The notes below the pieces were generated by a model. The model did not search any database. It was not told where the DNA came from and worked only from the letters and a program-made list of their open reading frames with translations. The position numbers were made by a program, and so were the translations under genes. From Macrostomum lignano (Eukaryota), in contig NIVC01001102.1 in assembly GCA_002269645.1 (NCBI GenBank), forward strand, positions 248,001 through 312,000: a stretch of 64,000 nt of DNA. The letters are read 5' to 3'. Positions 3,156 to 40,184 of the stretch are shown here, in pieces. How positions within the stretch are numbered: position 1 is the first letter of the stretch; every line of letters begins with the position of its first letter.

Positions 3156-3907
3156 CAGTCTACAGAGATAGCCGACATTGATAATCAGGGAAATCTTCCT
3201 GGTAAAAATACTCGTGTTAACAGAGCAGTTTAATCCGCAGATATCTCAACTTTCTTTCAGCTCAGCAAAGTTTTTATGAAAGACGATTTTTTTCCTTAGT
3301 TAACTACGAATAACGGAAGGACTGTAATATTTCAAATTGTCTAAAGTAGTGCGATTATGACAAAGTAAGTAACATTGCCCGAAAGTAATGTTCACCTTTA
3401 TTAAGTATACTTTATTACTTGATAATAATGGTGATTACCTCCAATCTATAGCTAAATAAGAGACCATATTCGATTTTAATTCTTATTATCTCATTTCATT
3501 TGCTAATAAAAAATCTTGCATTGCTACTGATAAGTAATAAAAGTAGTCCGGTGTGCAAAAAAGCAAAGATAAGGATTAGTTTATTATTAGAGTCCAGATT
3601 TCTCTTATCTACAATTTTAGTAAAGCAGTGGTATGAAGCACTTTATTTAATACTTTAAGTAGTTAAATGCGCCTGCTAGATATGCGACTTTTAAAGAGTA
3701 TTTATAAATTCTTCATTGCATTAATAAGCACATAAAAGTACATTAGCAAAATTGTGTTTGTTTTTCACCTGAGTTCTTGCGTTTTTTATTTTGAAAATAT
3801 TGGTAATGTGTAGTTGGTAGTTTGCAGTGCTTAACTTGTAGCTTCTCTGTAGCTTGTAGATTTGTCTTTGTGTGGATCTTCTATCAGCTAAATACCGAAA
3901 TCTCTAT

Positions 3908-4292
3908 TAGATAATCGTGTAGATCTACTAGATTATCATTTAGATCTACTGGATTATCATTTAGATCTACTGGATTATCCTGTTAGATCTATTAGATTGT
4001 TCTTTAGATCTACTAGATTATCCGGTTGATCTACTAGGTTATCCCTTAGATCTACTAGGTTATCCTTTAGATCTACTAGGTTATCCTTTAGATCTACTAG
4101 ATTATCCGGTTGATCTACTAGGTTATCCCTTAGATCTACTAGGTTATCCTTTAGATCTACTAGATTATCCGGTTGATCTACTAGGTTATCCTTTAGATCG
4201 ACTAGGTCATTCTTTAGATTTACTAGGTTATCCTTTAGATCTACTAAGTTATTCTTTAGATCTACTAGAACATCCTGTAGATCTTTTAGATT
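3908..4292. repeat. 21-bp minisatellite (TAGATCTACTAGGTTATCCTT), about 18 units
   Basis: Visible tandem units; explains the spurious NLVDLKD ORF 3975..4295. Confidence 0.95.
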
Positions 4293-6589: not shown

Positions 6590-7735
6590 TGGTATCGAAA
6601 TCGGTAGATTTTGAATCAGAATCGGTAGATTTGAAAGTCAGAATTGGTAGATTTGGGAGTCAGAATCGGTAGATTTGAGAGACCAGATTTGGTAGATTTG
6701 AGAGACAGAATCGGTAGATTTGAGAGACCAGATTTGGTAGATTTGGGAGTCAGAATCGGTAGATTTGAGAGACCAGATTTGGTAGATTTGGGAGTCAGAA
6801 TCGGTAGATTTGAGAGTCAGAATCGGTAGATTTGAGAGTCAGAATCGGTAGATTTGAGAGTCAGAATCGTAGATTTGAGAGTCAGAATCGTAGATTTGAG
6901 AGTCAGAATCGGTAGATTTGAGAGTCAGAATTGGTAGATTTGAGAGTCAGAATCGGTAGATTTGAGAGTCAGAATTGGTAGATTTGAGAGTCAGAATCGG
7001 TAGATTTGAGAGTCAGAATCGGTAGATTTGAGAGTCAGAATTGGTAGATTTGAGAGTCAGAATCGGTAGATTTGAGAGTCAGAATCGGTAGATTTGAGAG
7101 TCAGAATCGTAGATTTGAGAGTCAGAATCGTAGATTTGAGAGTCAGAATCGGTAAATTTGAGAGTCAGAATCGTAGATTTGAGAGTCAGAATCGTAGATT
7201 TGAGAGTCAGAATTGGTAGATTTGAGAGTCAGAATCGGTAGATTTGAGAGTCAGAATTGGTAGATTTGAGAGTCAGAATTGGTAGATTTGAGAGTCAGAA
7301 TTGGTAGATTTGAGAGTCAGAATTGGTAGATTTGAGAGTCAGAATTGGTAGATTTGAGAGTCAGAATCGGTAGATTTGAGAGTCAGAATCGTAGATTTGA
7401 GAGTCAGAATTGGTAGATTTGAGAGTCAGAATTGGTAGATTTGAGAGTCAGAATTGGTAGATTTGAGAGTCAGAATTGGTAGATTTGAGAGTCAGAATCG
7501 GTAGATTTGAGAGTCAGAATCGGTAGATTTGAGAGTCAGAATCGGTAGATTTGAGAGTCAGAATCGGTAGATTTGAGAGTCAGAATCGGTAGGTTTGAGA
7601 GTCAGAATCGTTGATTTGAGAGTCAGAATTGGTAGATTTGGGAGTCAGAATCGGTAGATTTGAAAGACAAGATATGGTAGATTTGCGATAAGAATATCTA
7701 TAGATTGAGAACTTGATTGGGTAGATTTGAAAGCA
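6590..7735. repeat. 22-bp minisatellite (GAGAGTCAGAATCGGTAGATTT), about 50 units
   Basis: Visible tandem units with degenerate edges. Confidence 0.95.
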
Positions 7736-9760: not shown

Positions 9761-10199
9761 CTCTCCGGTTGACGTCGACCCACGCGTCGCCGCAATTTAC
9801 TTATGGTCATTGAAAACTATATCCATAAGCAGGTTGGTGGGTGGCTGGCATGCCGATCACTAATCTCGTTTGTACTGGACCCGCAGCGCGCTCTCGGGGC
9901 CTGGCCTAAATCTCGCTTTGCCACGAGGCCGCCTCTGATTCGTCCGCTGATTTAAGCCAAGATTAACTTGGTGGGTGTAGGCCGCGTTGACCCCTCCGCT
10001 GGGCCAAGCTGGTTTCTGAAATGGCATTTTATTGTTTTAAACTTATTTCTAAATTAAAATTAACTCTAGTCTGACTCTACGCACTATATGAGGGGTGTCT
10101 AAGAACTTTTTAGACGCACTAAGGTAGAAAATAAAAAATATCAAATAAGAAAAGTATATAACAATTTCGCGTAACATGCTCACACTACACTCAAGTTTG

Positions 10200-12130
10200 G
10201 GTTCCTCATCGACCTGAACTCAGTGCATACAGGGTCTAGACGGCTTTTTCGTGCAGACCTCAGTCCTTTAAGCGCGCTGGTTCCCCAAAGCAATTCGCCA
10301 CCACGCAGCTGGAGCCGACCACACCACTCGCAAAATTCCCCCCGAGTACTTGAGGCGCCAAAATTACAATGCACCGAGCTAGATGCCACATCAGTGCGCC
10401 ACCACATCGAAACGACTGGTGAAGCTATATTCTTTTGACCACGACCGCTGTCTACAGCCATATTCGCCTTAGAAAAGAGAATTCGATAAACTTTTACGAT
10501 TCGGGATTGTCCGCCCCTCTAACAGTCTCGGTGCCTCCCCGCTGCACGTGGTGAAAAAGAAGGCCGGCTCCTGGCGAATATGTCGGATTACCGGGCATTC
10601 AACGCAGCAAAAAAACGACCGCTATCCAATTCCAAACATCAATCATTTTCACCATCATAGAGTATACACGGAGCACGTTCGGGTCGTTTGAATACCTTCG
10701 AAAGCCATTGACCTCCGGAATGCCGCTAGTACAAGCTACGTTTCAACGGTACGTAGACTCCGTCTTCCACAATCTCCCGTTCGCAACGTTGTACATCAAT
10801 GACGTCCTGGTACACAGCGCACCAATCACAAAAAGAGCACCAGGTGCACATCGAAGCGGTGATGCGACGTCTCAGTGGCCACGGCGTGGGTGTAAATTCT
10901 GAAAAGTGCCGCTTTTTCCGCGACTCTGTGGAATTTCTGTGCTACCTCGTCGCTGCCGACGGTATTAGGCCGCTACGCTCGTACCGGACTGCGTCAAAGC
11001 TCTACGACAAACTTAAGGCTCCCACTGACTATAAATCATTGCAGCGTTTCCTCGCGATTTTTGGTTTTTACCAGCAGTGCATCCCAAGCGACAGCTTCTC
11101 ACTGCGCCCTTAATTTGGACGAGTCTACACGAAAGCGCTTGAGAGGCACTTCAAGACAGCCTTGCGAATGGAGTCACGCTTGCGTTCCCACACCCTAACG
11201 CCACGTTCACGATCAAAACCGATGCAGGTGCAATCGGAGCAGCGTTGCATCAAGTGGGGGCTAGGCAGTCTTCACCATTGGCTTTCTACTCGCGCAAGCT
11301 ATCCGCCATAGAAGCGGCTTATGGCACATTTGATCGCCAGTTATCTGTCATCATCAAGTTTGTGAGCGACATCATCCACATTCCGGGAAAGACAAGGTCG
11401 TAGCCGACGCGCTATGAAGACCGGTCCGCCCCACCCAAGATCATTGGCATCAAGGACTGCCCGCTGCAGTGTGAAATCTATATCTGACAAAACCACACCC
11501 GTCGTCCCTAATTAGCTCTTCGGTGCGCGGTGTTCGACTCTGCATCTGTTTGCACACCCTGGCAGCAAAGCCACTCGGCGACTCAGTATCTATCGTTTCT
11601 TTTGGCCGTGCATAGCTACCAACATCCAGAAATGGGTGTCCGAGTGTCAGCTGTGTCAGCAGTCCAAGACAGGTCGTCACGTCCAATTCCCGCTGCAACA
11701 GCTTCCGACGCCCTCTGAACGCTTCACGACAGTCCATATATCGACCTCGTTGTACTGCTCCCGCCTCCAGATTCAGCCGACGTCCGTCCAAGACCCCGCT
11801 AGTTGCTCACGATGGTCGACGCCTATTCGCGCTGGATTGAAGCCACGCAGAAGACGCGTCTTCCTAGACCCCTGTATTTCACGGTTACGCCCGCCACTGA
11901 CGCTGGTGAGTGACCACGTCTTGCAGTTCCGTGGAGCTAATGCAGAACTTGACGACACTGCTCGGCATACATCACATCAGCACACCCTCGCGACAACGTT
12001 ATAGTCGAACTATAGCCCATCGGACGCTTAGGCTGGCCTGAAAGCGCGAGGAAAGAACTGGCTACAGCAACTGCCCATTTTTCTTCTCGGAATTCGCTTT
12101 TGAACTGACGACTCAAGCACACCCCATTTC
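10200..12130 (+). mobile_element. Decayed Ty3/Gypsy pol relic (RT-RNaseH-integrase)
   Basis: Broken frames give SPLHVVKKKAGSWR, ATFQRYVDSVFHNLPFATLYINDVLV, EKCRFFRDSVEFL, TDAGAIGAAL..AFYSRKLS and ECQLCQQSK..PSERFTTVHI in Gypsy order, with many indels and stops. LTRs not identified. Confidence 0.88.
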
Positions 12131-12199
12131 TCCTACTTGACAGGAGAGCTACCGTTGGTACCACTAGTTTTCACTGATGACTGATCACTCAAGGAACTC

Positions 12200-12370
12200 T
12201 CGACAGGCATGCATCAGCTGTATACAATAGACATCAAAGGAAACCGTACAGTCGAATGGAAATACGTCGCAAATGCGTTGTTTGTTCGACAGTTTACAAT
12301 CTTAAAGAACAAACCGCACTTATCACTACATTTGCAAAATAAAAACGCTTTCTACCAGGGTGTAGCCGAA
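12200..12370 (+). mobile_element. Possible piggyBac transposase C-terminal Cys-rich relic
   Basis: RRKCVVCS then, after a frameshift, HLSLHLQNKNAFY loosely resembles the piggyBac terminal zinc ribbon. Weak. Confidence 0.25.
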
Positions 12371-13259
12371 AAAAACACGGATGGTTCCTGTTGGACTAAA
12401 AGTCCTTAAACTTCAAGCTTATAAAACAGCTAATAATTCATTACAGAACAATAATAACTTCACTATACGGAAGTGTTAGATTTCAATTACCTGTCTTTTA
12501 TCTTGATAATATTTAGCCGACTTGAACCGGAAAATCCATTTCGATTGTATCCCAAATGTATTCCAAGAAATTATCAATAAACATCTTCGCGTTTACACTT
12601 AAATCATTGATGCCTCCTCCGACTCGCCTAGGTAACTAAAATTGGCACATTGACAATACAAATTTAGCGGCTGGCTAAAGAAAAGATTGACATATTAAAG
12701 ACATTCTACATTCTTGAAGTTAACCATTGTATCAGGAAACGTTTGATAGAAACTTATTTGAAGACCAAATTTCGCTTGAAAATACATAAACGACATAGGA
12801 ACTTATCAGGTCGTAGCTTTTAGCATGAATTGTTTTTAGCATTAATGCGTCTTGAGGGGAGAAAAAACCTAATTAGATCATGTTGGATTGGAGTCTCATG
12901 TTAGATAGAAGAGTCTTGTTTTAGATAGAATAGTCTTTTGTTAGACCCTGTCAGTACAAATCACATAACAATGTACTATGGACCTAAATACTCAAAACAA
13001 GACAAATAAGCAAAATGAATGCAGACCCAACTTTGCATCCTTTTCTCTGCAGTCGAACAGCCAGCTTAGCCTATTTTTATGCCTCTCTTTCAGGGTTTCC
13101 TGAATTTAAGTTTATAAAATTTTGAAGAGCTGCATCGGACGAACTTCATACCATCTTTCTGGGATCTTCATTGCAGAAGGTTGTTTTTAGTTAAGAGGCT
13201 GTGTGCACAACCGGCAAGAGGCATTGCTGCCAATCTCGCCGACTCCCCTAAGCAGGCAC

Positions 13260-13518
13260 ACAAGCGCGCGGATACGTACGCAGTCATACACGCAGGCACA
13301 CACTCACACAGCGGCCTTAACTTTATTTATCGTTAGACATGTACGAGCGTACACTTCAATGTGCCTTGGGGGTTGGCCGTCAATGGCGTTAATTGCACAA
13401 GCAGACCAAGCCGAGTTTCCAATTTAGCCCAAAATTAATGTGACTGCACTTGGATTCGAGCCTGGGCCGCTGGCACATCAGAGCGCCGCGCCAGACCGCT
13501 GGCCTGCGTCCTCGGCCG
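13260..13518 (-). mobile_element. tRNA-derived SINE, family A
   Basis: Minus-strand head with B-box-like GGCTCGAATCC, then the body motif ggccaacccccaag..gtacatg..acgat..aagt.a.ggccgctg shared with 7 other loci in the window. Confidence 0.7.
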
Positions 13519-13665
13519 ATTTTAGGTAAGCAAAAATAGTCCTTTACCAAGAGTGGTTTAAAAATTGTTTTCTAGCTAGCTAGTTGTATTTTAAGCGAGA
13601 TTTGGCCTAAATAAGTTGCAGTGATCCTTTTAGCAAAGTGTGCAGGGTCGTCATTAAATATTTCA

Positions 13666-15922
13666 TTACAAGATAATGCAGTAATTTTGGAAACGTTTGT
13701 CACTCACGAAAAAATGGAATAATGAGACGATAATTTTTCTTCGATTTTCAAAACCTCCGTTGCCTTCAGAACTACCAATAAACTTAGCGAGAAAGTTTAC
13801 GAGCGCCCTTATTTCTGTCTGTAGCGACCGCACTGCGCAGATCCGATCATGGCAGACGTCGATGCCAAGCGAGTCGCAGCGTTGCAGCAACTTCATCACC
13901 GCTGCTTTGCCTTCTTTCACGGACAGCGTCGAGTCTCCTTCCGGACACAGAACGCCGCCGAACTCTTCATCGCAAATCTGTTCACAAGACTCTCCTATCG
14001 GCATTCCGACTTTGTAGTGAGCCATCATGGTCAGACAGTTCTTCACTACCTCATGACAGCCCTCGAGCTCGCTGATTTTGTGCAGCACCCGTGCGAAGTC
14101 TTCAGGTGCCACAGGCTGACACTGACTCGGTGTAGCCTCTCTGTGCATCAGGGATTGAATCTCCCACACGATACCGAAGATCTCTTTACACTTGAAGTTC
14201 ATCTCGCCCTTGCTAAATTGCATCACGTCAGCAAAGTATATCAGAGGCTGAAGAGCAATGTGAAGATGAACAACTCTGACGCTGTTTTTGGTCAGACCGG
14301 CTTCAAAGACCTGAGCGATCTTCTGAATGTCATCGATCGCGGTTTTGGTCTCAGTAACGATTGACCTTTTGTCTGCGTGGTCCTTCTTCAGGTACACGAC
14401 GGCATCGCGCAAGAAGAAGTGTCTCATGCACACAGCTTCGAGTCTTCGGTCTGCGGCAGCAGCTTGAGTTGGATCGCTCACCTCTTCGTTATCAAAGCTC
14501 TCCATCATAGCTACCAGCATCTCCAGCGACTGCTTCAACAGTGACAACAAGTTTTCTGGTCTCCAGTCTTCGACGGGCGTCTCGTCAAGCATGTAGAACA
14601 GCAGGTTCTTGGCCATGTACGTCTTCAGACCGCTCACTTTAGAGCTGATGTGTCTCTTGATGAAGAACTTGAGCAGCACAAACAACTGTCCTTGGACTGT
14701 GGTGAGGTTGTGCATGACGATTCTCTCCAACAGAGTAGTGCTCACCCTCATCCGACTGCCCTCGAGTCCGGGAGGCGACGCAGATACGGCATGACACCGC
14801 GGCACTTGGAGAACCTCGGTTCGGATGGCTTCCAAAGTCTGTGTCGAAATGTGGGACCTGTAGCCGGGCGACAGCAGCTCGATGCGCGGATAGCTGCAGC
14901 AGTGCCGAGCAGAGATGGCTTCAATTTCCGGCAGTCGAAAAGTTGCTCCGTTGAAAGAAAGGCAGGGCGATGGTTCTGAAAAGTTCACACAATTAGTGTG
15001 GTTTTGTTTGTAGGCCATATAGCAGCATACTAGACCACTGGCCTAAGCGCTCGGCTGTGGTTTGTGAACCGCTCTGTTTTTGTTGTCATTCTCATGCAGT
15101 CGGATGCTTCGTAATTTCATAGGACATTTAATGTGTGTCGCATTATTGGTGACTTAGTTATTTCTTAGTTCACCTTCACTTGTCTCTGTTTACTATGTTT
15201 TATCTGCCTCTCTGTCTAGTTCAATCTTGTTATTCTTCTCTCTCTGCCTTGCTAAGTTGCTTCATTCTGATTGGCTCCTCAATCTCGCCTCTTTCCTTAG
15301 ACACGCACTCCACCCCTGCTTTTATTATCTGGACGCCCCACTTACTACTTCCGTCTGTTTAATATAACTCTAATTTAGAAACGTCTATCTTGCTATTTTC
15401 TTTACAGTTGGTAAATAAAAACCAGTCTTTTAAGCCCATTTGTCCCCTTTTCAGGAATTCCCTGACTCTTACATACTAAACTGCCGAACCTATTTATCAA
15501 GCCGATCAAGCTAAGGGTTTCAAAACTCGGATCGTTGAAAGTTCCGGCTAACCTTTTGATGCATAACACACGTGCCCGTCCTCGTAGTCAGCCACCTTGC
15601 AGCCTTTCAAACAATTGCTCGTCTCCGAGGCACTGCAGTCAGCTGGAATGTGAACCGAGTTCGACTTCAGCACGAATGTGATGTCAATATCCGAGTCTGA
15701 GTCGATGCTGCCGTCAATTGTGCTCAAGCAGCTGCCCCAGCCGTCGCAGAAGCTGCCGAACACGAAGAAGGTATCTTGGGACTTGAGCAGCAACCTCAGC
15801 AAGTCTTCAAGAGCCAAGGCTACTCCGCTCTGAGCTGCTGCATTTGAGGACTTGAAGCCCGCAGTCCTCATGGCAGCTGACAGGGCTCGGCTCTGGTCAG
15901 TGAATCGCTCTTCATCGGTCAT
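13666..15922 (-). CDS. Mab-21/cGAS-like nucleotidyltransferase, copy 1; exons 15922-15553 and 14975-13666 (about 559 aa)
   Basis: Exon 1 has FVFGSF..SDSDIDITF (GS and D-x-D). Exon 2 has EAISARHCCSYP, MRVSTTLLE, LLKFFIK, LKTYMAKNLLFY..E...DW and MRHFF, the Mab-21 helical-lobe pattern. Phase-1 splice aaag|gttag to ttttcag|aa. An extra 3' exon is possible. Confidence 0.85.
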
Positions 15923-16217
15923 TTCAAGACCGAACACAGAAAACGCAGCCTTTCGGTATGTCGCATTGAAATTTTGCTAGCACCTAGATTTGCTATTTTT
16001 CTGTGAGATTTTCTCGGTAGCTTTTTAAACATATCTAGGTACCTTAGAGGCGGTACTATATAACAATACGCTCGTACACTATGCAAACCGAACACTATAT
16101 GCTTTATAAAGAGGCCATTTTGCCTGTAGTTATTCAAGTTGATGCTTCTTTAATTCTTTTGTTTCAAAATTTTGATCCAAATATACTGATGGCTGTTCGA
16201 ATTTCGAATGAAGCGAA

Positions 16218-16681
16218 TGATGCTGATGATGATGATGATGCTGATGATGATGATGCTGATGATAGTGATGCTGATGATAATGATGCTGAGATGATGATAA
16301 TGATGGTGATGGTGATAATGATGATAATGAAGATAATGATAATGATGATAATGATGTTGATGATGATGATGATGATGATGATGATGCTGATGCTGATGAT
16401 GATGATGATGATGCTGATGATGATGATGCTGATGATAGTGATGCTGATGATAATGATGCTGAGATGATGATAATGATATTTCTGATAATTATGATGATGC
16501 TGAGATGATGATAATGATGGTGATGATGATAATGATATTGCTGATGATGATGATGATGCTGAGATGATGATAATGATGGTAATGATGATAATGATGGTGG
16601 TGATGATGATGATGATGATGCTGATGATGATGATGCTGAGATAATGATTATGCTGAGATGATGATAATGATGGTGATGATA
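16218..16681. repeat. Imperfect (GAT)n microsatellite
   Basis: Visible; generates the poly-D, poly-M and poly-H/S ORFs in the track. Confidence 0.95.
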
Positions 16682-17570
16682 ATTAGCTCTGCCAGACAAT
16701 TACACAAAGGAAGTATCGTTGATCATTGTAAGCTTTTTATAGGCATGGTGGGTTGTTGCAGAAGGAAACAAAATGTATTTTCTAGATATTCATGAATTAT
16801 TAAGTATATTTGAAACAGAATCAAGTCAGAACCTCTTATTGAAACAGAATCAACTAGTTTAAGTTGTCCCTAGTCAGAACTTTGTTTGATCATCTACATC
16901 AGACGTCGACAAAATTTTTACTTCAAGAGCCGGATAAAGAATCTACAATAGATCATTACTGCGGGTCAGATGAGAGAGTGGAAAGGAGAGGTAATGGAGG
17001 AGAGAGAAGATGGAGGAGATGACAGAAGAGAGGAGAGGCGAGATGAGAAATGCGATGAGATTAGAAATGAGTAAAAAGCTGAAAGAGGAGACAAAAGACA
17101 GAGGAGAGAACTAAGAAGAGACTAACCTTAAGCGCGTCGGATTGCTATCGTGAAGCTTCAAAGGACCCGAAGACCGGGCAGCGAGACTTTACAGCCCGGA
17201 GTTTGCTGACCCCTGGTCTAAGTGAAGTCGCGAGTTCTTATTTCAAATGTGCTTAAATACTTTTATTAGGTGACGATTAAACATCATCATTGTTGCCTAA
17301 TACGTCGTACATGTGTCTTACGAGTATATGCTTGAAACCTACTTCTACTTCTATCTGTTCAATACGTGTATTCTGAAATTTTATTACCAAAGGACTGGGT
17401 ATTAGACTCCCATTCCGAAGAGATTGCCCTTAATATTAATAATATAATTGCAAGGAGGACTAGCTAAGGGCACCCTGCCGCAACGTCATAAGCAAAATCA
17501 TCGCACGTCGCTTCCAGCGTCGGCAGCTACGAGCAGAAGCAAGCCCGGATACTGTATACAAGCCGACAAC

Positions 17571-17645
17571 TCACACACACGCTCACAGGCTGTACAGCGG
17601 CCCTGACTTTCTAATCGTCTGGCATGTACACTCTCCGTGCCTTGA
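17571..17645 (-). mobile_element. SINE family A core fragment
   Basis: gctcacaggctgtacagcggccctgactttctaatcgtctggcatgtacactct matches the family core. Confidence 0.75.
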
Positions 17646-18237
17646 AGAATTCACGAAACAGATCGACGCTGGATATTGGCTCTTGATCGGCGAAGAGTTT
17701 TGAGTCGAAAGGAATTAGTGTCAACCTGCCTAATTCAAGGATATATATCGTCGAAGAATGTCCCAAACATCTATTAGCGGAACGGCCGGAGGGAGAGAAC
17801 AAAGGCAACAATCGGATAGCACGGGCAAAACATCCTACCGCCCTGTATGGGCAACTTACGAGACCCGAGTATATTCGAAAGCATTCGAAAAAACTATTTG
17901 GAAAGCATTTGGAAGAGTAAAAGGTAAACGAAGCGAAAGAAAAAAAAGAAGTTGCAGAGATTGCGAGAAAGGGGGCTAAAAGAAGAAAAAAACGCACACG
18001 CAATCTGGTGAGGAGAGATAGGCTGAGGCGGGCACAACGCACGGGGGCTAAAAAGGCCCCACAGACACCCACCCCCGGACCAAGCACCCCCAAACGGGCG
18101 ACGACAAGCCCCCCCCCCGGCCCCGCTAACAGCGATTGGCCAGCCAATCTACACTTAGCGGAACGGCCGGAGGGAGAGAACAAAGGCAACAATTGGATAG
18201 CACGAGCAAAACATCCCAAAAAACCTGAACAAAAGGA

Positions 18238-19230
18238 TTAAAGAGTAGTGTACACGGCGACGGGGAGAGTCAGGCGAGCGCTAGAGAGGTGCCGACAGCA
18301 CACGCTTGACCATTGGGCGCAGGAGACGGAGGCAACCCCCCCCCCCCCCGACTGCGGCAGGTAACGTGAAACGGCGCCGCTGCGCCAGCCGCCCAGCCGC
18401 TTGATCTGCTCCACGTCGAGGCCGCTGTCGAACGCCAGACAGACGCCACCCCGTCGTAGAGAGTGGCCTGAGAAAGCTGTCACCGCCCAACCCGCATCTG
18501 TCAGAGCCCGAGCGAGGCGGCGGTTGAATTGACGCGATGTCATCGGGCACCAGCTTCCGGCCATGTGGACGCAAAACAGCCGAGTGAGCGCCGGCGCAGA
18601 CAGCAGCTTGTTAGTCTGAAAATGCCGCCGCAGGGCTTGGACAGGACAAAGTGGGTGGCTTCCGAGCGCTGGCAGCACCGCCTCCTGGTAGTCTTGTCTG
18701 CATTGGTTGGTCTTCGACTGTCGAACTCGGAGTCTCCAGCACTGACTATCGGCCTGAGTGTCGCCGACGAGAATGAAGTGGCGCCCGCAGACACTTGCTT
18801 TCCTGAGAAGCGCCCAGAAGCAGCAGAGCACGGCGGCCCAAAAGGCGGCGTCTGCAGGGTCTCTTGGGTTCACCTGATTTGCCAGTGAAAACAGAACCGC
18901 CGGGGTGATGGGGTCTTTCTGCTTGACTGAATGGCCGCTTGTCCGTTTGGCGCTCTTAACTGCCAGATCGACCAGGCCGGACTTGGTGATGTCGGGGAGT
19001 TGCGCCAGCTTGAAGCTCCAGCTGATGGCCGCCAAGTGTCCACCGAGGCTACCGGGTGCCACGCCGCGCTTAGCCAGGCGTCGCACATACTCGACCAGGT
19101 GCACCGGGGACGCCGCTAGTGGCTGAACACCTTCGAGGTTGCAGAAGCGCTGCCACTGTTCGAGGTTTGAAGCGTACGATGCCCTCGTACTAGGAGCCCA
19201 GGCGTCGGCGAGAAAGCGAAGGAGAGGCCC
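18238..19230 (-). CDS. Tyrosine recombinase of the Ngaro element
   Basis: WAPSTRASY..WQRFC, LLRKAS, SKT, LCPV, FSGHSLRRGG and GGWRS..VSRY: catalytic R-K-HxxR-W-Y all present. The frame is open to about 19320 and overlaps the RNaseH end; start codon unclear. Confidence 0.92.
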   Translation of the reverse strand, partial: GPLLRFLADAWAPSTRASYASNLEQWQRFCNLEGVQPLAASPVHLVEYVRRLAKRGVAPGSLGGHLAAISWSFKLAQLPDITKSGLVDLAVKSAKRTSGHSVKQKDPITPAVLFSLANQVNPRDPADAAFWAAVLCCFWALLRKASVCGRHFILVGDTQADSQCWRLRVRQSKTNQCRQDYQEAVLPALGSHPLCPVQALRRHFQTNKLLSAPALTRLFCVHMAGSWCPMTSRQFNRRLARALTDAGWAVTAFSGHSLRRGGVCLAFDSGLDVEQIKRLGGWRSGAVSRYLPQSGGGGVASVSCAQWSSVCCRHLSSARLTLPVAVYTTL

Positions 19231-19329
19231 GGGTAGGCGGGAGGGAGGAGGCGCCGGACCTGTAAAAGCAAAAGGGAGGCGGAGGCAGAGCAGAGCGCGT
19301 GGCGCGAGATGCAGCAGGAGTCAGCAGCC

Positions 19330-20905
19330 AAATTATGCAGGCTACGGTAGAAGCGGGGAAAAAAATTCTAGAAGCAAGGCGAGAGGCCGGATCCGCCAGG
19401 ACCTGGAAGGCGCCTGGAACGTGAAAGGCCCGCAGCCGAAGACCCCACGCGTCGCAGGCAAGCGACAGCGTGTGCAGGAGCCGGTTGACGTCGTTACATG
19501 GCGAGCTGAGCTTGTTCAGCGCACCTACAGCCGCCGAGCTGTCGCTGTACACGACGATGTCCGCACCGGTGAAACGGCCCGGGGCCGCGAGGATGCTGAG
19601 GACAGGCGTGATGGTCTCCTTTACGTTAATGTGGGCCGAAGCAAAAAGGCCACCAGCGTCATTCTTCCAGTTGATGTAGAGCCAGTCGGACTTATTGGCC
19701 AGTCATTCTTCCAGTTGATGTAGAGCCAGTCGGACCCGAGTTGCAGGCGTCCGTCTCGATGACGATCCTTCGAGCGTAGCGAGGCCAGATGGGCGCGCAG
19801 CCAACGGACTGAAGGCTTTTCCTCTACCAGTGCAGCGACTCGGTGAGGTGCGGGGTCAGCCGCAATTTGTCACCAGGTCTAGTCGCCCGGCTCACCAGCA
19901 TCAGTAGAGGGCGGATGGAAGCTCGGCCTTTCCTGGTCACGCTGCTCACCCAGGACAGCTTGCCGCAGATCCGCTGAAGGTCGCGCTTGCTGATGGCACC
20001 GCGTCGATGCAAGCAGCTCCCAAATGCGTCTTTGAGTGCACTGAGCTTGGCCGGTGGGATGCTCAACATCCCCGACTCTGTGTCAATCAGGACGCCCAGG
20101 AAAACTGTGCGCCGCGACGGCCCGCTAGACTTCTTTTCGTTGATGGTGAAACCGAGGCTCGTCGCCAGGCTCCTCAAGCTCTCGTAAGCCTCGACACAGG
20201 CCTCGTAGGTGCTCGCCGCCACAGCGAAGTCGTCGAGGTAGCCAACGCAGGTGAACCCGCACCGTTGCATCATGCGCACCACCGCCTTAGACAGCCTGTT
20301 GAAATGGTACACCGAGGCCGCAGCGCCGAAGCTCAGCCGGGTGTCGACCAGGTAGGTAGGCTCGCTGTCGCCGCTAAATTGCCATTTGATGCCCAGAGCG
20401 TCGAGAGAAGAAGGATAAACACCCACTGAGCGATACGCCTCCTTGAGATCGATCTTGGCCGTGAAGTCACCGGGCTTGAGTTGTGAGCAGAGGCCGCTAA
20501 CCGTCTCAAACTTAATCTTGTGGTCTGCGATAAAGTGGTCGTTGACCGCATAGCCTTCCGGACGACTGCAGTCGTGGATGATACGGACTCCACCGTCCTC
20601 TTTCGGGATGGCACCAAGCGCGGAGATCTTGCACGGACGTCGGCTGATTGACACATACCGCCCGCTGGCGATCTCACGCTGCAATTGCTCTTCAACCAAC
20701 GTCTTGTACTCAATGGCGGACGAGTAGTTCTCAACTTCGGAAAGTTTAAAATCTGTTTCAGTAGTGAGCGCGAAGCCGTTTTGGACTCCGTCAATTAAAA
20801 AAGGCCCGTCGGGGTCGCCGTCCAGCTCCTTCGCCCAGGCATTTGCGTCAAGGGAGCCACTCGGATTGAAATTGATGTCGCGAATGGAGTTAAAAACTTG
20901 GGATT
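19330..20905 (-). pseudogene. Ngaro pol (RT + RNaseH), disrupted
   Basis: W..ELDGDPDGPFLIDG, RIIHDCSRP, KIDLKEAY, RLSFG, YLDD, FLGVLID; RNaseH TDAC, HINVKE, YSDSSAAV, HVPG..LADPASR. TAG at 19824 and a 34-bp duplication (19658-19691 / 19702-19735) break it. Confidence 0.9.
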
Positions 20906-20931
20906 AAAACTTGCGGCCACTGGAGCCGCGG

Positions 20932-21923
20932 CTATTCGTTTTTTGCCGCGTGTTGCGTCTCGCTGTGGTCCGAGCGCAAGCAGACTCGGCACGCATGAGT
21001 GTACTTGCAATTCTGGAACTTGCAGCCACCACGGGTGTTGAACTTGAGGCAGACGGGCGCTCCTTGAATCACCGGAATCTCCCTGTCCGTGCGAGAACGG
21101 GCATGTTGTGGAGTCTGCTGCGGGGCAATGAGGTGCCGTGCCACCAGCGAGAAACTCGGTCGCACCCAGTCTTGCATGCCCGCCTGCTGCTCTCTTCTGA
21201 ATGCGTCGTCGAACTGCATGATCCTGGTGGTGTCGTAACCTGCCTCGACCAGCTCACCGTTCTGCACATTGTACTGCAAGTACTGCCGAACGCTTTCCAG
21301 GTCGAGCTGTCCCCTAGAGATCAGGGCGTCGAGGATGCGCGCGTTACCGACTATCCACTGACCGATTCCCAGCGATTCGGGTTTAGGCTGATTGGCGGTT
21401 GGATGCAGCACCTTTTCCCTACGACTCGCCGGCGCCGTCCGAGGGTCGCAACCGCAGAAATCCGCAACGACGAGTGGTGCCGCGCGTAGCCCTAGTTGAG
21501 CTACTGAGGGCTCGAGCCTGGTCTCGAACCCGGGACCTCTGAGCATACTCGGGATATTCATGTCGCTACTACAATCAGAGGGCTCATTAAGAAGCTGTTG
21601 GTCCACCTCACCTGGTCTAAATCGGCCTTCCAGCTGCTGGCGCATTGCTGCCGTCTCCGATTCCAGGCTAGCTATCTTCCGCCGGAGCTCTGATAGGTCC
21701 AGCGCCTCCCCTGCCTCCAGCCGTTGTTGCTGCTGCTGCCGCCGACCTTCGCTGTCGGTCTCCGCGGAGTTTGACGCCGCTTGTTCCGCCGACTAGCTGC
21801 TTCGCTCTGGCTCATCGCAGTGGAGAGTCTGCTGACCAGGTCTTTCTTGTAACCGTGCGTGCTCAGGCCCCTATCTCTCAATTCTTCACGTAGCTGATTT
21901 ACAGTCATCCTACGCAAACTCAT
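20932..21923 (-). CDS. Ngaro ORF1/gag-like: N-terminal SAP motif, coiled coil, C-terminal Cys/His zinc finger; one frameshift near 21792
   Basis: MTVNQLREELRDRGLSTHGYKKDLVSRL fits the SAP consensus. Adding one base near 21792 joins it to SAEQAAS...AMRQQLEGR...CLKFNTRGGCKFQNCKYTHACRVCLRSDH. Confidence 0.82.
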
Positions 21924-22141
21924 AGTACCCAGAGTAAATTGAATAATTAAGTTGGGCTAGCCAGAAATCGCAAAAAAACGCACGCAAGCTGGCGAGGAGA
22001 GATAGGCTGAGGTGGGCACAACGCACGGGGCTAAAAAGGCCCACAGACACCCACCCCAGGACCAAGCAACCCCAAACACGGGCGACGACAAGCCCCCCCC
22101 CCTGGCCCCGCTAACAGCGATTGGCCAGCCAATCTACACTT

Positions 22142-22650
22142 GAGTCGACTAGAAACAATGCAGGGAAAGTCAGACAAGGAGATTCTGATACTGACTGGAA
22201 GAGCTAAAATTGCACTCGTAAAACTGCGTGGACAACATCTGGAAAGCAAAAAACATCCACATGAAAAATAAAATGCTGCTAATGATATTGGTAGTCATGG
22301 AAAATCTTCTCTATGCGTGAGTGCTGGGCAATGGAGAAGAAGTATGAAAAGCAACTGAGATCTTTCGAGATGAAGACTTACAGATCTATGATGGAGGCCT
22401 TGTGGAAGGAAATTCCGCTCCTTCAGGCAATGTGCGAGAAGTGATGGAGCGCTGAAGGCCGTGGTTGAAGTTGTTGGTGAGGGGCGAAGGGACAGAGGCA
22501 GGCCACAAGGTGGTTGGACAGGCAGTCTAGCTGATGGAGTGGAGTGGAGAGTGGATGGTGCAGCGGAGCAGGATTGCCTTGGATCGAAGGAGTTGGAGAT
22601 TCGCTGTCGAGAAATGGATACACCAACAGCCATAACCGTTTACCGACCTA
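22142..22650 (+). mobile_element. Second RTE-like LINE relic, apparent host of the Ngaro insertion
   Basis: GKSDKEILI, NIWKAKNI.MKNK...LLYA/ECW..EKQLRSFEMKTYR and IALDRRSWR are RTE C-terminal motifs; the frame reads through the reconstituted empty site from about 17746. Confidence 0.7.
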
Positions 22651-23430
22651 ATGATGATGATAGCCAGGAAACGTCTCAAACATCCATTGAGTCGACTAGC
22701 GGCTGCCGAGGTCGATTACGTCTAAAAACTCGGGTCCTGCAAAAAATGGCGTGATGTATCTGTGCAGTATTAGTCTGGGATGGCCTCTTTCCCCAGCCAG
22801 CAATGCTCACATTTGACCCTTTTGGCTGGAAACAGTCCAAGAGTCTCTGGGACTCTGTCTCTTGTTTTCATCTTGCAAGGCATACTTTCAAGGGCCTTCC
22901 TGAACAGATTTATTGGCGCCGAGGACCCACAAACCCACCCTCTAATGTGTCAGTGTAACTCCGTGCTGATGTTCGCTTGCTAGGAACGGTTTCCCTTGCG
23001 TCCTTGGGTCCTCACGCAGGGAGGGATTTTTTCTCTTGAGGAACCTGCCGCTTGGTTTGGGGAGCAGTGTATTGCAGCTCTTTGCCTGTGTTCTGCAGTA
23101 AGTTCACCTTTTTCACTTCCAGTCAATAGCTTCAACGAGTAGCCGAAGGGACTTGCGAAAATACTTCGTTGGAAGTTATGGAAGTTATTGGTCGTCATGG
23201 GCTAGCGTAATGAGCGGTCTCGCCCGCTTCCACGCTTCATCCGCCGGACGATGCCGCCTGCAACTCAATCAAGTAATTCAACTAGCAGCTGCTCTCACAG
23301 AGTCTTGGGTTCCGAGGTTGGTCGAGCCTTTGTTAGTTATCTTTGGCGTGTGTTCAGCAGCTCGTACATGTGTTCAGAAAAATACGTAAGTTACAGATAA
23401 ATACGTAGCAAAACTCCTGTGCAAATTGTA

Positions 23431-26400
23431 GGTAATCAGTCAGACACATTGGTGATCAGTCAGACACATGGGCAATGAGACAGACACATGGGTGAACAGT
23501 CAGACACATGGGTGAACAGTCAGAGACATGGGTGAACAGTCAGACACATGGGTAAACAGTCAGACACATGGGTAAACAGTCAGAGACATGGGTAATCAGT
23601 CAGACACATGGGTGAACAGTCAGACACATGGGTGAACAGTCAGACACATGGGTGAACAGTCAGACACATGGGTGAACAGTCAGACACATGGGTGAACAGT
23701 CAGACACATGGGTGAACAGTCAGAGACATGGGTAATCAGTCAGACACATGGGTGAACAGTCAGACACATGGGTGAACAGTCAGACACATGGGTGAACAGT
23801 CAGACACATGGGTAAACAGTCAGAGACATGGGTAATCAGTCAGACACATGGGTGAACAGTCAGACACATGGGTAAACAGTCAGACACATGGGTAAACAGT
23901 CAGAGACATGGGTAATCAGTCAGACACATGGGTGAACAGTCAGAGACATGGGTAATCAGTCAGACACATGGGTGAATAGTCAGACACATGGGTAATCAGT
24001 CAGACACATGGGTAATCAGTCAGACACATGGGTGATCAGTCAGACACATTGGTGATCAGTCAGACACATGGGCAATGAGACAGACACATGGGTGAACAGT
24101 CAGACACATGGGTGAACAGTCAGAGACATGGGTAATCAGTCAGACACATGGGTGAACAGTCAGACACATGGGTGAACAGTCAGAGACATGGGTAATCAGT
24201 CAGACACATGGGTGAACAGTCAGACACATGGGTGAACAGTCAGACACATAGGTGAACAGTCAGAGACATGGGTAATCAGTCAGACACATGGGTGAACAGT
24301 CAGACACATGGGTAAACAGTCAGACACATGGGTAAACAGTCAGAGACATGGGTAATCAGTCAGACACATGGGTGAACAGTCAGACACATGGGTGAACAGT
24401 CAGAGACATGGGTAATCAGTCAGACACATGGGCAATGAGACAGACACATGGGTGAACAGTCAGACACATGGGCAATGAGACAGACACATGGGTGAACAGT
24501 CAGACACATGGGTGAACAGTCGACACATGGGTGAACAGTCAGACACATGGGTGAACAGTCAGACACATGGGTGAACAGTCAGACACATGGGTGAACAGTC
24601 AGACACATGGGTGAACAGTCAGACACATGGGTGAACAGTCAGACACATGGGTGAACAGTCAAACACATGGGCAATGAGACAGACACATGGGTGAACAGTC
24701 AGACGCATGGGCAATGAGACAGACACATGGGTGAACAGTCAGACACATGGGCAATGAGACAGACACATGGGTGAACAGTCAGACACATGGGCAATGAGAC
24801 AGACACATGGGTGAACAGTCAGACACATGGGTGAACAGTCAGAGACATGGGTAATCAGTCAGACACATGGGTGAACAGTCAGACACATGGGTGAACAGTC
24901 AGACACATGGGTGAACAGTCAGACACATGGGTGAACAGTCAGAGACATGGGTAATCAATCAGACACATGGGTGAACAGTCAGAGACATGGGTAATCAGTC
25001 AGACACATGGGTGAACAGTCAGACACATGGGTGAACAGTCAGACACATGTGTGAACAGTCAGACACATAGGTGAACAGTCAGAGACATGGGTAATCAATC
25101 AGACACATGGGTGAACAGTCAGAGACATGGGTAATCAGTCAGACACATTGGTGATCAGTCAGACACATGGGCAATGAGACAGACACATGGGTGAACAGTC
25201 AGACACATGGGCAATGAGACAGACACATGGGTGAACAGTCAGACACATGGGTGAACAGTCAGACACATGGGTGAACAGTCAGACACATGGGTGAACAGTC
25301 AGACACATGGGTGAACAGTCAGACACATGGGTAAACAGTCAGAGACATGGGTAATCAGTCAGACACATGGGTGAACAGTCAGACACATGGGTAAACAGTC
25401 AGACACATGGGTAAACAGTCAGAGACATGGGTAATCAGTCAGACACATGGGTGAACAGTCAGAGACATGGGTAATCAGTCAGACACATGGGTGAATAGTC
25501 AGACACATGGGTAATCAGTCAGACACATGGGTAATCAGTCAGACACATGGGTGATCAGTCAGACACATTGGTGATCAGTCAGACACATGGGCAATGAGAC
25601 AGACACATGGTGAACAGTCAAACATATGGGCAATGAGACAGACACATGGGTGAACAGTCAGACACATGGGTGAACAGTCGACACATGGGTGAACAGTCAG
25701 ACACATGGGTGAACAGTCAGACACATGGGTGAACAGTCAGACACATGGGTGAACAGTCAGACACATGGGTGAACAGTCAGACACATGGGTGAACAGTCAG
25801 ACACATGGGTGAACAGTCAGAGACATGGGTAATCAGTCAGACACATGGGTGAATAGTCAGACACATGGGTAATCAGTCAGACACATGGGTAATCAGTCAG
25901 ACACATGGGCAATGAGACAGACACATGGGTGAACAGTCAGACACATGGGCAATGAGACAGACACATGGGTGAACAGTCAGACACATGGGTAAACAGTCAG
26001 ACACATGGGTAAACAGTCAGAGACATGGGTAATCAGTCAGACACATGGGTGAACAGTCAGAGACATGGGTAATCAGTCAGACACATGGGTGATCAGTCAG
26101 ACACATGGGTAATCAGTCAGACACATGGGTAATCAGTCAGACACATGGGTGATCAGTCAGACACATTGGTGATCAGTCAGACACATGGGTGAACAGTCAG
26201 AGACATGGGTAATCAGTCAGACACATGGGTGAACAGTCAGACACATGGGTGAACAGTCAGACACATGGGTGAACAGTCAGAGACATGGGTAATCAGTAAG
26301 ACACATGGGTGAACAGTCAGACACATGGGTGAACAGTCAGACACATGGGTGAACAGTCAGAGACATGGGTAATCAGTCAGACACATGGGTGAACAGTCAG

Positions 26401-26977
26401 ACACATGGGTAAACAGTCAGACACATGGGTAAACAGTCAGAGACATGGGTAATCAGTCAGACACATGGGTGAACAGTCAAACACATGGGTGAACAGTCAG
26501 ACACATGGGTGAACAGTCAGACACATGGGCAATGAGACAGACACATGGGTGAACAGTCAGACACATGGGCAATGAGACAGACACATGGGTGAACAGTCAG
26601 ACACATGGGCAATGAGACAGACACATGGGTGAACAGTCAGACACATGGGCAATGAGACAGACACATGGGTGAACAGTCAGACACATGGGTGAACAGTCAG
26701 ACACATGGGTGAACAGTCAGACACATGGGCAATGAGACAGACACATGGGTGAACAGTCAGACACATGGGTGAACAGTCAGAAAAATGGGTAATCAGTCAG
26801 ACACATAGGTGAACAGTCAGACACATGGGTGAACAGTCAGACACATGGGTGAACAGTCAGACACATGGGTGAACAGTCAGACACATGGGTAATCAGTCAG
26901 ACACATGGATGAACAGTCAGACACATGGGTGAACAGTAAGACACATGGGTAATCAGTCAGACACATGGGTGAACAGT
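23431..26977. repeat. 20-bp satellite (CAGTCAGACACATGGGTGAA), about 177 units with a small set of variants
   Basis: Directly visible. Confidence 0.97.
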
Positions 26978-27538
26978 TTGAACATGACCAAAACCAAAAC
27001 CAATTTGAACCAAATGGGTAACTATACTTATTTCTTTATTTTATCGTCCACACTATATAAATTTGCAATTAGCAAATAAGCTTTAAACATTGAAGTATTA
27101 AAAAAACTGTTTACAAGAAACAGAACTAAACATTTTTGAGACTACAAAGCTGAACTTAATAAAATATAGGAATTTACTGAGTAACAAGAGGTGCTAACAA
27201 CATGTAGAAGACACATCGTCGTAAATATCACAAATGTCTTGATTCAAATTAACTCAATTATGAAGTAAGCTTTATAGGCCCGCGTACTCCCAGACATAAA
27301 AAAGGCTATCTCAAAATATCTTTATGTATTATTAATAAATCTAAATACGAGTACAAATCAGATTGTATTGAGCCTCTCCATTTTCCAAGTTGATCTCCCA
27401 AGTTTCAGTGAATTCAAAAGCATCAATGATTGTTGTCACTTTTTGTCAGTCTAAAAATTAAAACAAAAAATGAAACACGAGTGTATAATACATTTGAATT
27501 ATAAAAATTGAGATATGGAATCAAGCCTACGTTTGACA

Positions 27539-29748
27539 TTACTGGGACTGTAGTGCTTCCTCCTCTTCGTCATCTGACCAGTCTCTGAGGGCTGGACAAT
27601 CTTCGGTACCGACAACTTCGCAAAATATCATGAGGATATTCCGCGCGAAATTCACTTCACTAGAACGCCAGCCATCGCCCTCAGTTCTAAACACCTGAAG
27701 TTAAAATAAATAATTAAATAATTAAATTCCTAAACCTCCTGACGGATTAAATAAAGCTGGTTTAGAAGAACTGATTACCGGAAAAGGAAAATTTGTAGCG
27801 AGTAGAGCTGCTGATGCGAAATCTAGCACATGTAGAGCAGTGTCGGTGGGTAAACTACTTCTTCTGCAGTTTTTCAGAAATGTGGACAACACCTGAAACA
27901 GTTGCCAAATTTCTGTCTGCAGCGACCGCACTGCGCAGATCCGATCATGGCAGACCTCGATGCCGAGCGAGTCGCAGCGTTGCAGCAACTTCATCACCGC
28001 TGCTTTGCCTTCTTTCACGGACAGCGTCGAGTCTCCTTCCGGACACAGAACGCCGCCGAACTCTTCATCGCAAATCTGGTCACGTGACTCTCCTATCGGC
28101 ATTCCGACTTTGTAGTGAGCCATCATGGTCAGACACTTCTTCACTACCTCATGACAGCCCTCGAGCTCGCTGATTTTTTGGAGCACCCGTGCAAAGTCTT
28201 CAGGTGCCACAGGCTGACACTGACTCGGTGTAGCCTCTCTGTGCATCAGGGATTGAATCTCCCACACGATACCGAAGATCTCTTTACACTTGAAGTTCAT
28301 CTCGCCCTTGCTAAATTGCATCACGTCAGCAAAGTATATCAGAGGCTGAAGAGCAATGTGAAGATGAACAACTCTGACGCTGTTTTTGGTCAGACCGGCT
28401 TCAAAGACCTGAGCGATCTTCTGAATGTCATCGATCGCGGTTTTGGTCTCAGTAACGATTGACCTTTTGTCTGCGTGGTCCTTCTTCAGGTACACGACGG
28501 CATCGCGCAAGAAGAAGTGTCTCATGCACACGGCTTCGAGTCTTCGGTCTGCGGCAGCAGCTTGAGTTGGATCGCTCACCTCTTCGTTATCAAAGCTCTC
28601 CATCATAGCTACCAGCAACTCCAGCGACTGCTTCAACAGTGACAACAAGTTTTCTGGTCTCCAGTCTTCGACGGGCGTCTCGTCAAGCATGTAGAACAGC
28701 AGGTTCTTGGCCATGTACGTCTTCAGACCGCTCACTTTAGAGCTGATGTGTCTCTTGATGAAGAACTTGAGCAGCACAAACAACTGTCCTTGGACTGTGG
28801 TGAGGTTGTGCATGACGATTCTCTCCAACAGAGTAGTGCTCACCCTCATCCGACTGCCCTCTAGTCCGGGAGGCGACGCAGATACGGCATGACACCGCGG
28901 CACTTGGAGAACCTCGGTTCGGATGGCTTCCAAAGTCTGTGTCGAAATGTGGGACCTGTAGCCGGGCGACAGCAGCTCGATGCGGGGATAGCTGCAGCAG
29001 TGCCGAGCAGGAATAATGTCGATATCCGACAAGCGTAGGTCATCGCCCCCGAGAGGTAAGCTTGGCGTACTTTCTAAAATACGAGATTCACAGCGTACTA
29101 AATTGTAACTAGAAGCGGCTAGAAGCGTCGTAAAATTCCATCTACGAGCGTAATTCCCTTTCTTGGTGTCCCAGGAGACGCATGTCATGTGTTAAAATGC
29201 TGTAACTCAGTTTGACACATGACCTCTAACTGGGGACGCCGCTTTCCAATAGGTCAGGGTGCAGGTGAGGGCTCCCATGGATAGGCGCACAGCACCACAT
29301 TCTAAACACTCCCTCATCATCACTAAACCGTTTGTGTCATTGCAGGAAAGAATTATAATGATCGTTTCTTGGACCCACCTTTAGACTGATAAGACACGTG
29401 CCCGTCCTCGTAGTCAGCCACCATGCAGCCCTCCAAGCACTGACTCGTCTCCGAGGCACTGCAATCAGCTGTAATGTGAACCGAGTTCGACTTCAGCACG
29501 AATGTGATGTCAATATCCGAGTCTGAGTCGATGCTGCCGTCAATTTTGCTTAAGCAGCTGCCCCAGCCGTCGCAGAAGCTGCCGAACACGAATAAGGAAT
29601 CGTAGGACTTGAGCAGCAACCTCAGCAAGTCTTCAAGAGCCAAGGCTACTCCGCTCTGAGCTGCTGCATTTGAGGACTTGAAGCCCGCAGTCCTCATGGC
29701 AGCTGACAGGGCTCGGCTCTGGTCAGCAAATCGCTCTTCTCCTTCCAT
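27539..29748 (-). CDS. Mab-21/cGAS-like nucleotidyltransferase, copy 2; exons 29748-29379, 29073-27779, 27694-27539 (about 606 aa)
   Basis: Same GS/DID motif and Mab-21 lobe; third carboxylate region SDIDIIPA. Exon 1 is 370 nt, identical in length to copy 1. The terminal exon (ccg|gtaatc to ttcag|gtg, ending DWSDDEEEEALQSQ*) is less certain. Confidence 0.85.
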
Positions 29749-39960: not shown

Positions 39961-40184
39961 TGGGACTGATACTGGCTGACTGAGAAATTGATTATGTCAT
40001 AACTTTTTACTCCAATTGACTTGCTGTAAGAATTGAATTATAAGGGCCACAATTCATGTTCTCAAATTAAAAAGAGATAGCCTAGATGCGAGTAGACTGG
40101 ACTGCTAATGTAGTGACCTGGGTTCGAATCTTAGTAGAGCAAAATAATTTTTTTGTTAAACACCCTCAAAACACAAAATGCTAA

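Follow-up and report, generated by a model that had tools for sequence, protein, structure and literature searches.

Introduction

RHD/RHCE, the red and green opsins and the fetal globins are tandem paralogs under concerted evolution in which some segments have escaped gene conversion; for the classic examples, sites within these segments have been shown to be under selection, such as those of spectral tuning or antigenic sites. Among innate sensors with a nucleotidyltransferase (NTase) fold, the pseudo-domains of OAS2/OAS3 and OASL are duplicated units that differ at their catalytic carboxylates and may be regulatory or sensing partners. Here we describe two genes of the cGAS-like receptor (cGLR) type, copies A and B, that lie on the minus strand of a 64,000-nucleotide (nt) stretch of the Macrostomum lignano genome (GenBank assembly GCA_002269645.1, contig NIVC01001102.1, positions 248,001 to 312,000; hereafter the window, within which all positions are counted). 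We read them as same-strand tandem cGLR paralogs, i.e. old duplicates that have been converted except in a block around intron 1, and assign this reading a probability of about 0.7. As in RHD/RHCE, the opsins and the globins, near-identical, sharp-edged tracts stand beside old unconverted segments and the non-coding DNA is far more diverged; in A and B, however, the escaping block centres on a non-homologous intron, and selection there is only a candidate cause. Carboxylates of the OAS pseudo-domains were lost, whereas the Asp to Glu change between A and B keeps a carboxylate; a physical or functional pairing of A and B would be hypothetical.

In the survey of Li et al. 2023 (PMC9980059), cGLRs are defined by the motif h[QT]GS X8-20 [DE]h[DE]h X50-90 h[DE]h, together with homology over both lobes and predicted structural homology. 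Its supplement 3 lists M. lignano proteins as #89-93 (PAA86972.1, PAA45980.1, PAA57558.1, PAA93208.1 and PAA68676.1), five of which were cloned; the species is not among the entries of the per-species table of cGLR and STING counts. The accepted M. lignano entries carry M, L, F or T before GS, and the [QT] rule was in practice not strictly applied. The survey does not address paralog mosaics or a Glu variant at the third carboxylate. Beyond it, we found no literature on Macrostomum cGLR, cGAS or STING.

Results and discussion

A mosaic of near-identical and unrelated sequence

The gene models of both copies (Table 1) exhibit GT..AG borders at all three introns and are corroborated independently by UniProt models and by the structure of a paralog. 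P0029, a model from a separate annotation, uses exactly the exon 1/2 junction of copy A (CYASK, then EPSP), while P0001 continues across the exon 2/3 junction of copy B. The paralog P0009 shows, at its own genomic locus, three exons with a small third exon and intron 1 at the homologous position, a position that is kept in P0010 as well. According to tblastn, the 64-kb window holds no further family member, i.e. two copies only.

Most of exon 2, hereafter the core, aligned without gaps (A 14912-13811, B 29010-27909) with 98.73% identity over 1102 nt in blastn, leaving 14 mismatches and 6 of 366 codons that differ. The first exons (A 15927-15551, B 29753-29377) matched with 93.4% identity; ungapped comparison of the exons proper yielded 27 mismatches in 370 nt (92.7% identity) and 110 identical residues out of 123 (89%), with the other 13 differing. 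Between these segments lie the first 63 nt of exon 2, hereafter the patch, where ungapped identity fell to 49.2% (32 of 63 nt mismatched), 8 of 22 residues were the same and 14 of 22 codons differed. Introns, upstream regions, tails and downstream regions of the two copies gave no blastn match to each other even at word size 7. A first-pass annotation of the DNA had described a near-identical core with about 6 differing codons, first exons of about 88% protein identity, some 22 strongly diverged codons between the exon-2 acceptor and the ARH motif, and introns and tails that look unrelated; all of this was borne out, the tail peptides likewise showing no significant similarity.

The annotation had also proposed a sliding comparison of identity. 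A scan statistic placed the divergence island at positions 355-432 of the spliced coding sequence (37 differences in 78 nt), with a log-likelihood ratio of 70.8; the maximum among 200 shuffles was 8.9, and 0 of the 200 reached 70.8. In the genome the diverged block is continuous, running from the last 15 nt of exon 1 through the unalignable intron 1 to the end of the patch; it is not an island within exon 2. Its edge towards the core is abrupt, with mismatches at patch positions 61 and 62 and then none over 25 nt. The mismatches of exon 1 are concentrated near its two ends and in two clumps between them, as patchy conversion tracts predict.

Two other interpretations of the alignments were tried and rejected. 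A compensated frameshift or indel artefact in the patch was dismissed, as a gapped alignment (35 of 66 identities) did not rescue the similarity and no frame of one patch resembled the other. MAFFT had hinted that the tails after LQTEI are homologous but diverged; the Smith-Waterman score of 19, however, was matched by 1343 of 2000 shuffles.

Table 1 Features of copies A and B and of the sequence between them (positions in the window)
Feature	Position	Strand	Description
Copy A, whole gene	13666-15922	-	Two exons; predicted 559-aa protein
Copy A, exon 1	15553-15922	-	370 nt, residues 1-123 + 1 nt; ATG, open reading frame, GT donor; N-terminal helices; G56-S57 at 15752-15757, D78 at 15689-15691, D80 at 15683-15685
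Copy A, intron 1	14976-15552	-	577 nt, GT..AG; no relation to copy B intron
Copy A, patch	14913-14975	-	63 nt, residues 124-145, EPSPCLSFNGATFRLPEIEAIS; loop and beginning of catalytic beta-strand
Copy A, exon-2 core	13811-14912	-	1102 nt, ARHCCSYP to LQTEI; read as converted tract
Copy A, tail	13666-13810	-	47 codons + TAA; no relation to copy B tail
Copy B, whole gene	27539-29748	-	Three exons; predicted 606-aa protein
Copy B, exon 1	29379-29748	-	370 nt; G56-S57 at 29578-29583, D78 at 29515-29517, D80 at 29509-29511
Copy B, intron 1	29074-29378	-	305 nt, GT..AG
Copy B, exon 2, whole	29073-27779	-	Patch, core and B-specific tail
Copy B, patch	29011-29073	-	63 nt, residues 124-145, ESTPSLPLGGDDLRLSDIDIIP; G5 run at 29046-29050
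Copy B, exon-2 core	27909-29010	-	1102 nt, counterpart of copy A core
Copy B, exon 2 end	27779-27908	-	B-specific tail WQLFQVL...NFPFP; agrees with UniProt models P0001 and P0002
Copy B, intron 2	27695-27778	-	84 nt, GT..AG; P0001 spans the junction
Copy B, exon 3	27539-27694	-	VFRTEGDGW...EEEALQSQ, then stop codon
Retrotransposon between the copies	17611-21645	-	Spacer; reverse transcriptase and tyrosine recombinase, DIRS/Ngaro-like
Satellite between the copies	23437-26977		3.5 kb, 20-nt unit, 177 copies

Segments of different age point to gene conversion

Synonymous (dS) and nonsynonymous (dN) divergence was estimated segment by segment with the Nei-Gojobori method. The core exhibited a dS of 0.033 and a dN of 0.007 (dN/dS 0.21), exon 1 a dS of 0.12 and a dN of 0.065. 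In the patch, the proportion of synonymous differences (pS) was 0.70 and thus saturated, with a dN of 0.60. Divergence of exon 1 and core differed significantly (Fisher p = 3e-8). All seven conserved residues inside the patch are encoded by different codons in A and B. Because its synonymous sites are saturated and its conserved residues use different codons, the patch is old and not a young, fast-evolving protein segment. The expression "sharply bounded hypervariable patch" used in the first-pass annotation holds for the boundary; the divergence itself is that of an old segment, and it continues through the intron into exon 1. With 8 of 22 residues shared, the patches of A and B are no closer to each other than those of family members with ~40% core identity.

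Since all surrounding non-coding DNA is unrelated, A and B are best explained as old duplicates. Tracts that differ in age, a remnant with saturated synonymous sites and non-coding DNA without similarity are, in combination, a classic signature of repeated ectopic gene conversion, which is a well-supported reading of the two sequences and agrees with the earlier suggestion of old duplicates homogenised by conversion. Most of the coding sequence would have been overwritten by ectopic, non-reciprocal recombination in two or more tracts of unequal age, the core and exon 1, whereas the last ~15 nt of exon 1, intron 1 and the patch would have been left unconverted for a very long time. Purifying selection would have kept 8 of the 22 patch residues while synonymous sites became saturated. 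The barrier may be self-reinforcing: a segment next to a non-homologous intron diverges, extension of the heteroduplex into it would be rejected, and the edge would become sharp and stable. Such a neutral barrier is the more likely explanation of the sharp edge, but it is not established.

Similar mosaics recur among relatives. P0010 and P0021 are 0.99 identical in the core and 0.94 in the equivalent of exon 1, but 0.59 in the patch. A tandem array on another contig of the assembly (GCA_002269645.1, NIVC01000561.1) carries three ankyrin-cGLR genes (~1388-4047, 10001-13870 and 18497-23252). Between its copies c1 and c0 the core is 100% identical over at least 300 nt (~11950-12250), with the intron ~58% and the loop ~62-70% identical, whereas c1 and c2 are 94.6% identical straight across the intron. 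Conversion mosaics thus seem to be common in the cGLR-like family. In addition, the B-type model P0002 has A-type residues at positions 49 and 276, as seen in protein models only. Import of the patch from a third paralog was considered too and is not supported, no candidate donor being present among 150 representatives.

Family, predicted fold and catalytic motif

Homology searches and structure prediction support the assignment of both copies to a large M. lignano-specific radiation with a predicted cGAS/Mab-21 fold. All 16 matches of a word-index search came from M. lignano, as did every named match of an exhaustive profile search down to E ~1e-17; the latter returned 337 representatives at E <1e-3 and 72 at E <1e-30. 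M. lignano, unlike most flatworms, has a very large cGLR-like radiation, and many family members carry fused ankyrin repeats. The next relative outside the A/B subgroup is 54% identical. The AlphaFold2 model of copy B is of moderate quality, with a predicted local distance difference test score (pLDDT) of 65.8 and a predicted template modelling score (pTM) of 0.73. Its top 39 Foldseek matches in the PDB were all cGAS, MAB21L1, MB21D2 or Tribolium cGLR (probability 1.0, target-normalised TM score 0.50-0.56, ~360-400 columns), followed by MiD51/49 and then by bacterial CD-NTase (CdnG). This is well in agreement with the cGAS-like fold claimed in the first-pass annotation.

The fold predicted for the copies is that of cGAS, MAB21L1, MB21D2 and Tribolium castaneum cGLR structures (4kb6, 6ct9, 5eog, 7lt1, 7lt2), and the catalytic positions (GS, DxD and third Asp) can be aligned with their counterparts in mouse cGAS. 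In contrast, the copies are only 10-16% identical to the solved cGAS/Mab-21 structures, have Phe in place of Gln/Thr before GS, and carry an extra ~170-260 residues C-terminal to the Mab-21 core that are without match. The hhalign alignment to mouse cGAS was statistically weak (E 0.004, probability 8.5%); the hallmark motifs line up nonetheless, pairing SDIDIIPA with ISVDIILA (the third catalytic Asp), MRVSTTLLER with WRLSFSHTEK, LKTYMAKNLLFYM with CSYHVKTAIFHM, and CMRHFFLRD with KLDHYFIPK. A phmmer search for solved structures by sequence returned nothing relevant, and PF03281 of Pfam had no match in copies A and B; paralogs do carry precomputed PF20266 matches. Within the C-terminal part of copy B, residues ~340-510 (window ~27915-28425) form a conserved helical extension of ~170 residues, which exhibits an "IPDCA" motif in paralogs and has no Pfam or structural match.

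Both copies display a catalytic signature of G56-S57, a 20-residue spacer, D78-I-D80-I, a 59-residue spacer and I-D142-I in copy B or I-E142-A in copy A. Among 72 relatives, GS is conserved in 70, D78 in 71, D80 in 69 and Asp142 in 63. Compared with the published cGLR motif, the spacing of GS, DxD and third carboxylate agrees in A and B, the spacer between GS and DxD being at its upper limit of 20 residues, whereas the h[QT]GS element does not, with Phe55 replacing Gln/Thr in both copies. The 72 relatives have V (33), F (19) or T (12) most often at this position. Structural homology, the further published criterion, is provided by the Foldseek matches of the copy B model described above. The GS-DxD spacer (residues 56-80; window 15683-15757 and 29509-29583) holds an invariant, family-specific D-G-W-G.

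The diverged strand bears the third carboxylate, as had been claimed at the outset: Asp142 in copy B (GAC, 29018-29020), which the weak hhalign alignment given above pairs with its mouse cGAS equivalent (ISVDIILA), and Glu142 in copy A (GAA, 14920-14922). Residue 140 is likewise Asp in B and Glu in A. In the AlphaFold2 model, the patch forms a short strand, a loop (132-138) with pLDDT <50 and the first half of a strand at 141-149. Among the 72 relatives, Glu142 was found only in copy A, in the A-type fragment P0029 and in the gene model P0011, which looks broken there. P0029 (UniRef A0A1I8IFP4; 207 aa) shares 206 of 207 residues with copy A. Glu, which outside the A type occurs in the doubtful P0011 only, is thus the derived state of the A lineage, and Asp the ancestral one.

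The suggestion of an undescribed innate-sensing module did not hold. The family is already classed as cGLRs in supplement 3 of PMC9980059, where #91 (PAA57558.1) corresponds to P0006 and is 41% identical to copy B. Apart from species and family, this protein shares with the copies the GS-x20-DxD arrangement with the DGWG insert, the third-Asp strand, MRVSTTLLER, LKTY..LLFYMLDETP and CM.HFF. A and B differ from the published M. lignano cGLRs in forming a separate, closer-knit subgroup that is not among the cloned proteins. They are new members of a catalogued, functionally uncharacterised cGLR family. The proteins would make nucleotide second messengers in innate immunity, and both copies are presumably expressed and active.

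Points against conversion between cGLR paralogs

Several observations weigh against reading A and B as converted cGLR paralogs. Conversion is deduced here from heterogeneous divergence between two DNA sequences, and the gene models derive from genomic DNA and annotated protein models only. The 3' edge of the 98.7% block meets unrelated sequence directly, with no unconverted homologous margin, which simple conversion does not predict. In an entropy profile, the patch is only moderately variable family-wide (rank 68 of 311 windows), so that intrinsic variability does not explain its particular escape from conversion. The most variable segment of the family, residues 92-112 in exon 1, is in turn homogenised between A and B. 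The idea that the patch, as the most variable segment, diverged first was therefore rejected as a sufficient explanation. Concerning the family assignment, both copies remained below threshold for Pfam Mab-21_C, with 20.6 bits against a cut-off of 24.1. A search of PDB sequences with the family profile retrieved no cGAS or Mab-21 match. Furthermore, none of the five cloned M. lignano members has an entry in the Note column, where the published supplement names the active enzymes (PMC9980059).

If this reading is right, the pair represents a clean, well-bounded case of an immune-type gene family under concerted evolution. It is also a natural experiment: 360 of 366 core residues are the same, while the loop and the strand that hold the third metal ligand differ. 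An inexpensive way to probe the role of this segment in cGLR chemistry would be to compare A with B or to exchange the 22 residues between them. The pair does not by itself open a long-standing question and is a fairly ordinary feature of a catalogued family, i.e. a tidy natural experiment for cGLR enzymology and not a new kind of system.

Alternative explanations

The first-pass annotation regarded the diverged segment as a specificity patch. In this case, conversions into the loop and strand would have been purged because A, with Glu142 and its own loop, and B, with Asp142, need different properties. The A-type patch is indeed identical in an independent record (P0029/A0A1I8IFP4), both patches have retained 8 residues although the codons have diverged fully, and so have been under purifying selection, and Glu at the third carboxylate is limited to the A type among the 72 relatives, bar the doubtful P0011. 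Loop divergence amid near-identical flanks recurs in P0010, P0020 and P0021, and the P0010 group has a conserved STGPNMA between the variable loop and the intron. However, dN/dS of the patch does not reach 1, its synonymous sites being saturated, and the diverged block is continuous with the intron and reaches into exon 1, which a neutral barrier fits equally well. The loop of the NIVC01000561.1 array diverges at about the rate of the intron, which resembles relaxed constraint and not positive selection, and the segment most variable in the family was homogenised between A and B. A functional difference between A and B would be hypothetical, and the published motif accepts D or E at the third carboxylate (PMC9980059). 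The active site of copy A is thus formally complete, which speaks against the earlier notion of D versus E as a switch between an active and a regulatory partner; different products or an active/regulatory pairing of A and B are pure speculation. Overall, we consider selection for specificity an unlikely cause of the diverged block.

About equally improbable is that copy A is decaying or non-catalytic, a pseudoenzyme or pseudogene whose coding sequence is refreshed by conversion from B. Its third carboxylate is now the derived Glu, and it lost the B-type tail and exon 3: sensitive blastn and tblastn detected no B-like tail or exon 3 over 5.8 kb downstream. The tail of 47 codons that copy A has instead (13666-13810) has a GC content of 36%, compared with 53% in the coding blocks, and looks like read-through into non-coding DNA. 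Moreover, no full-length A-type protein is annotated, just the 207-aa fragment P0029. Copy A may accordingly be truncated at its C-terminus, or possess an unrecognised downstream exon. On the other hand, its frame of 559 codons is intact and its splice sites are canonical, GS and DxD are preserved, the Glu is permitted by the published motif, and the core dN/dS of 0.21 does not suggest decay. The lost tail, too, belongs to a part of copy B that is modelled with pLDDT <50.

A broader version of selection for difference, in which the loop and strand after intron 1 would form a conversion-resistant diversity cassette across at least 80 M. lignano cGLR clusters, is a little less probable again. 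Selection would then maintain differences in this segment between neighbours that are homogenised elsewhere, giving tandem cGLRs distinct nucleotide products, metal use or activation, for instance through Asp142 and Glu142, and this in a phylum otherwise thought to be largely devoid of cGLR signalling.

A chimeric origin is more doubtful than any of these. Template switching (non-homologous or at microhomology) or partial duplication would have pasted a B-like exon 1 and core into a distant paralog that kept its own intron, patch and 3' region, in keeping with the very sharp edges on both sides of the core, with a 3' edge that opens into unrelated AT-rich sequence, and with a similarity of the two patches at the level of distant paralogs only. 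Yet no paralog among the 150 representatives has an A- or B-like patch (best 7-9 of 21), the chimera would require two separately pasted segments that differ in age, and the mosaic of the NIVC01000561.1 array argues for a recurrent homologous process.

An assembly or polishing artefact, with a near-identical core arising from collapsed or cross-polished paralogs, is very improbable: M. lignano assemblies are rich in repeats and the frame shifts of B-type UniProt models at the G5 run suggest indel errors in the older assembly, but 14 core differences are retained, introns, flanks and tails are entirely different, the copies lie 12 kb apart with a retroelement and a satellite between them, and the A type (P0029) and B types (P0001, P0002) were found independently, with a near-identical core, among UniProt models from a different annotation. 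P0001 and P0002 change frame exactly at the G5 homopolymer (29046-29050), and in P0002 the shifted frame lasts for ~38 codons, across the catalytic strand. The cause is either indel errors of the older assembly or B-type homeologs that have become pseudogenes.

Intervening sequence and other features of the window

The retrotransposon between the copies (Table 1) lies in a GC-rich region (0.57-0.62). Its reverse transcriptase reading frame (19824-20699) matched Pfam RVT_1 with E 2e-14, while the tyrosine recombinase frame (18238-19104) matched Phage_integrase with 23 bits, under the cut-off of that profile. Rfam and tRNA scans of the 64-kb window returned no matches. On the plus strand, a class I/II aminotransferase is divided between two reading frames that overlap (44492-45025 and 44979-45587) and are in different frames; a short intron, a frameshift or decay to a pseudogene may be the reason. 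Two divergently oriented single-frame protein kinase genes (51836-53410, minus strand; 54000-55517, plus strand) are paralogs with 31% identity and represent, unlike the cGLR pair, old duplicates in the same window without homogenisation. About 300 nt upstream of the copy A start codon there is an ATG/CAT trinucleotide microsatellite of ~157 units (16217-16680). Apart from the satellite between the copies, the window contains at least six other, unrelated minisatellites (2352-3155, 3903-4292, 4846-5437, 5641-6142, 6599-7685 and 40183-43074), whose periods of 20-23 nt represent a strikingly narrow range for independent arrays.

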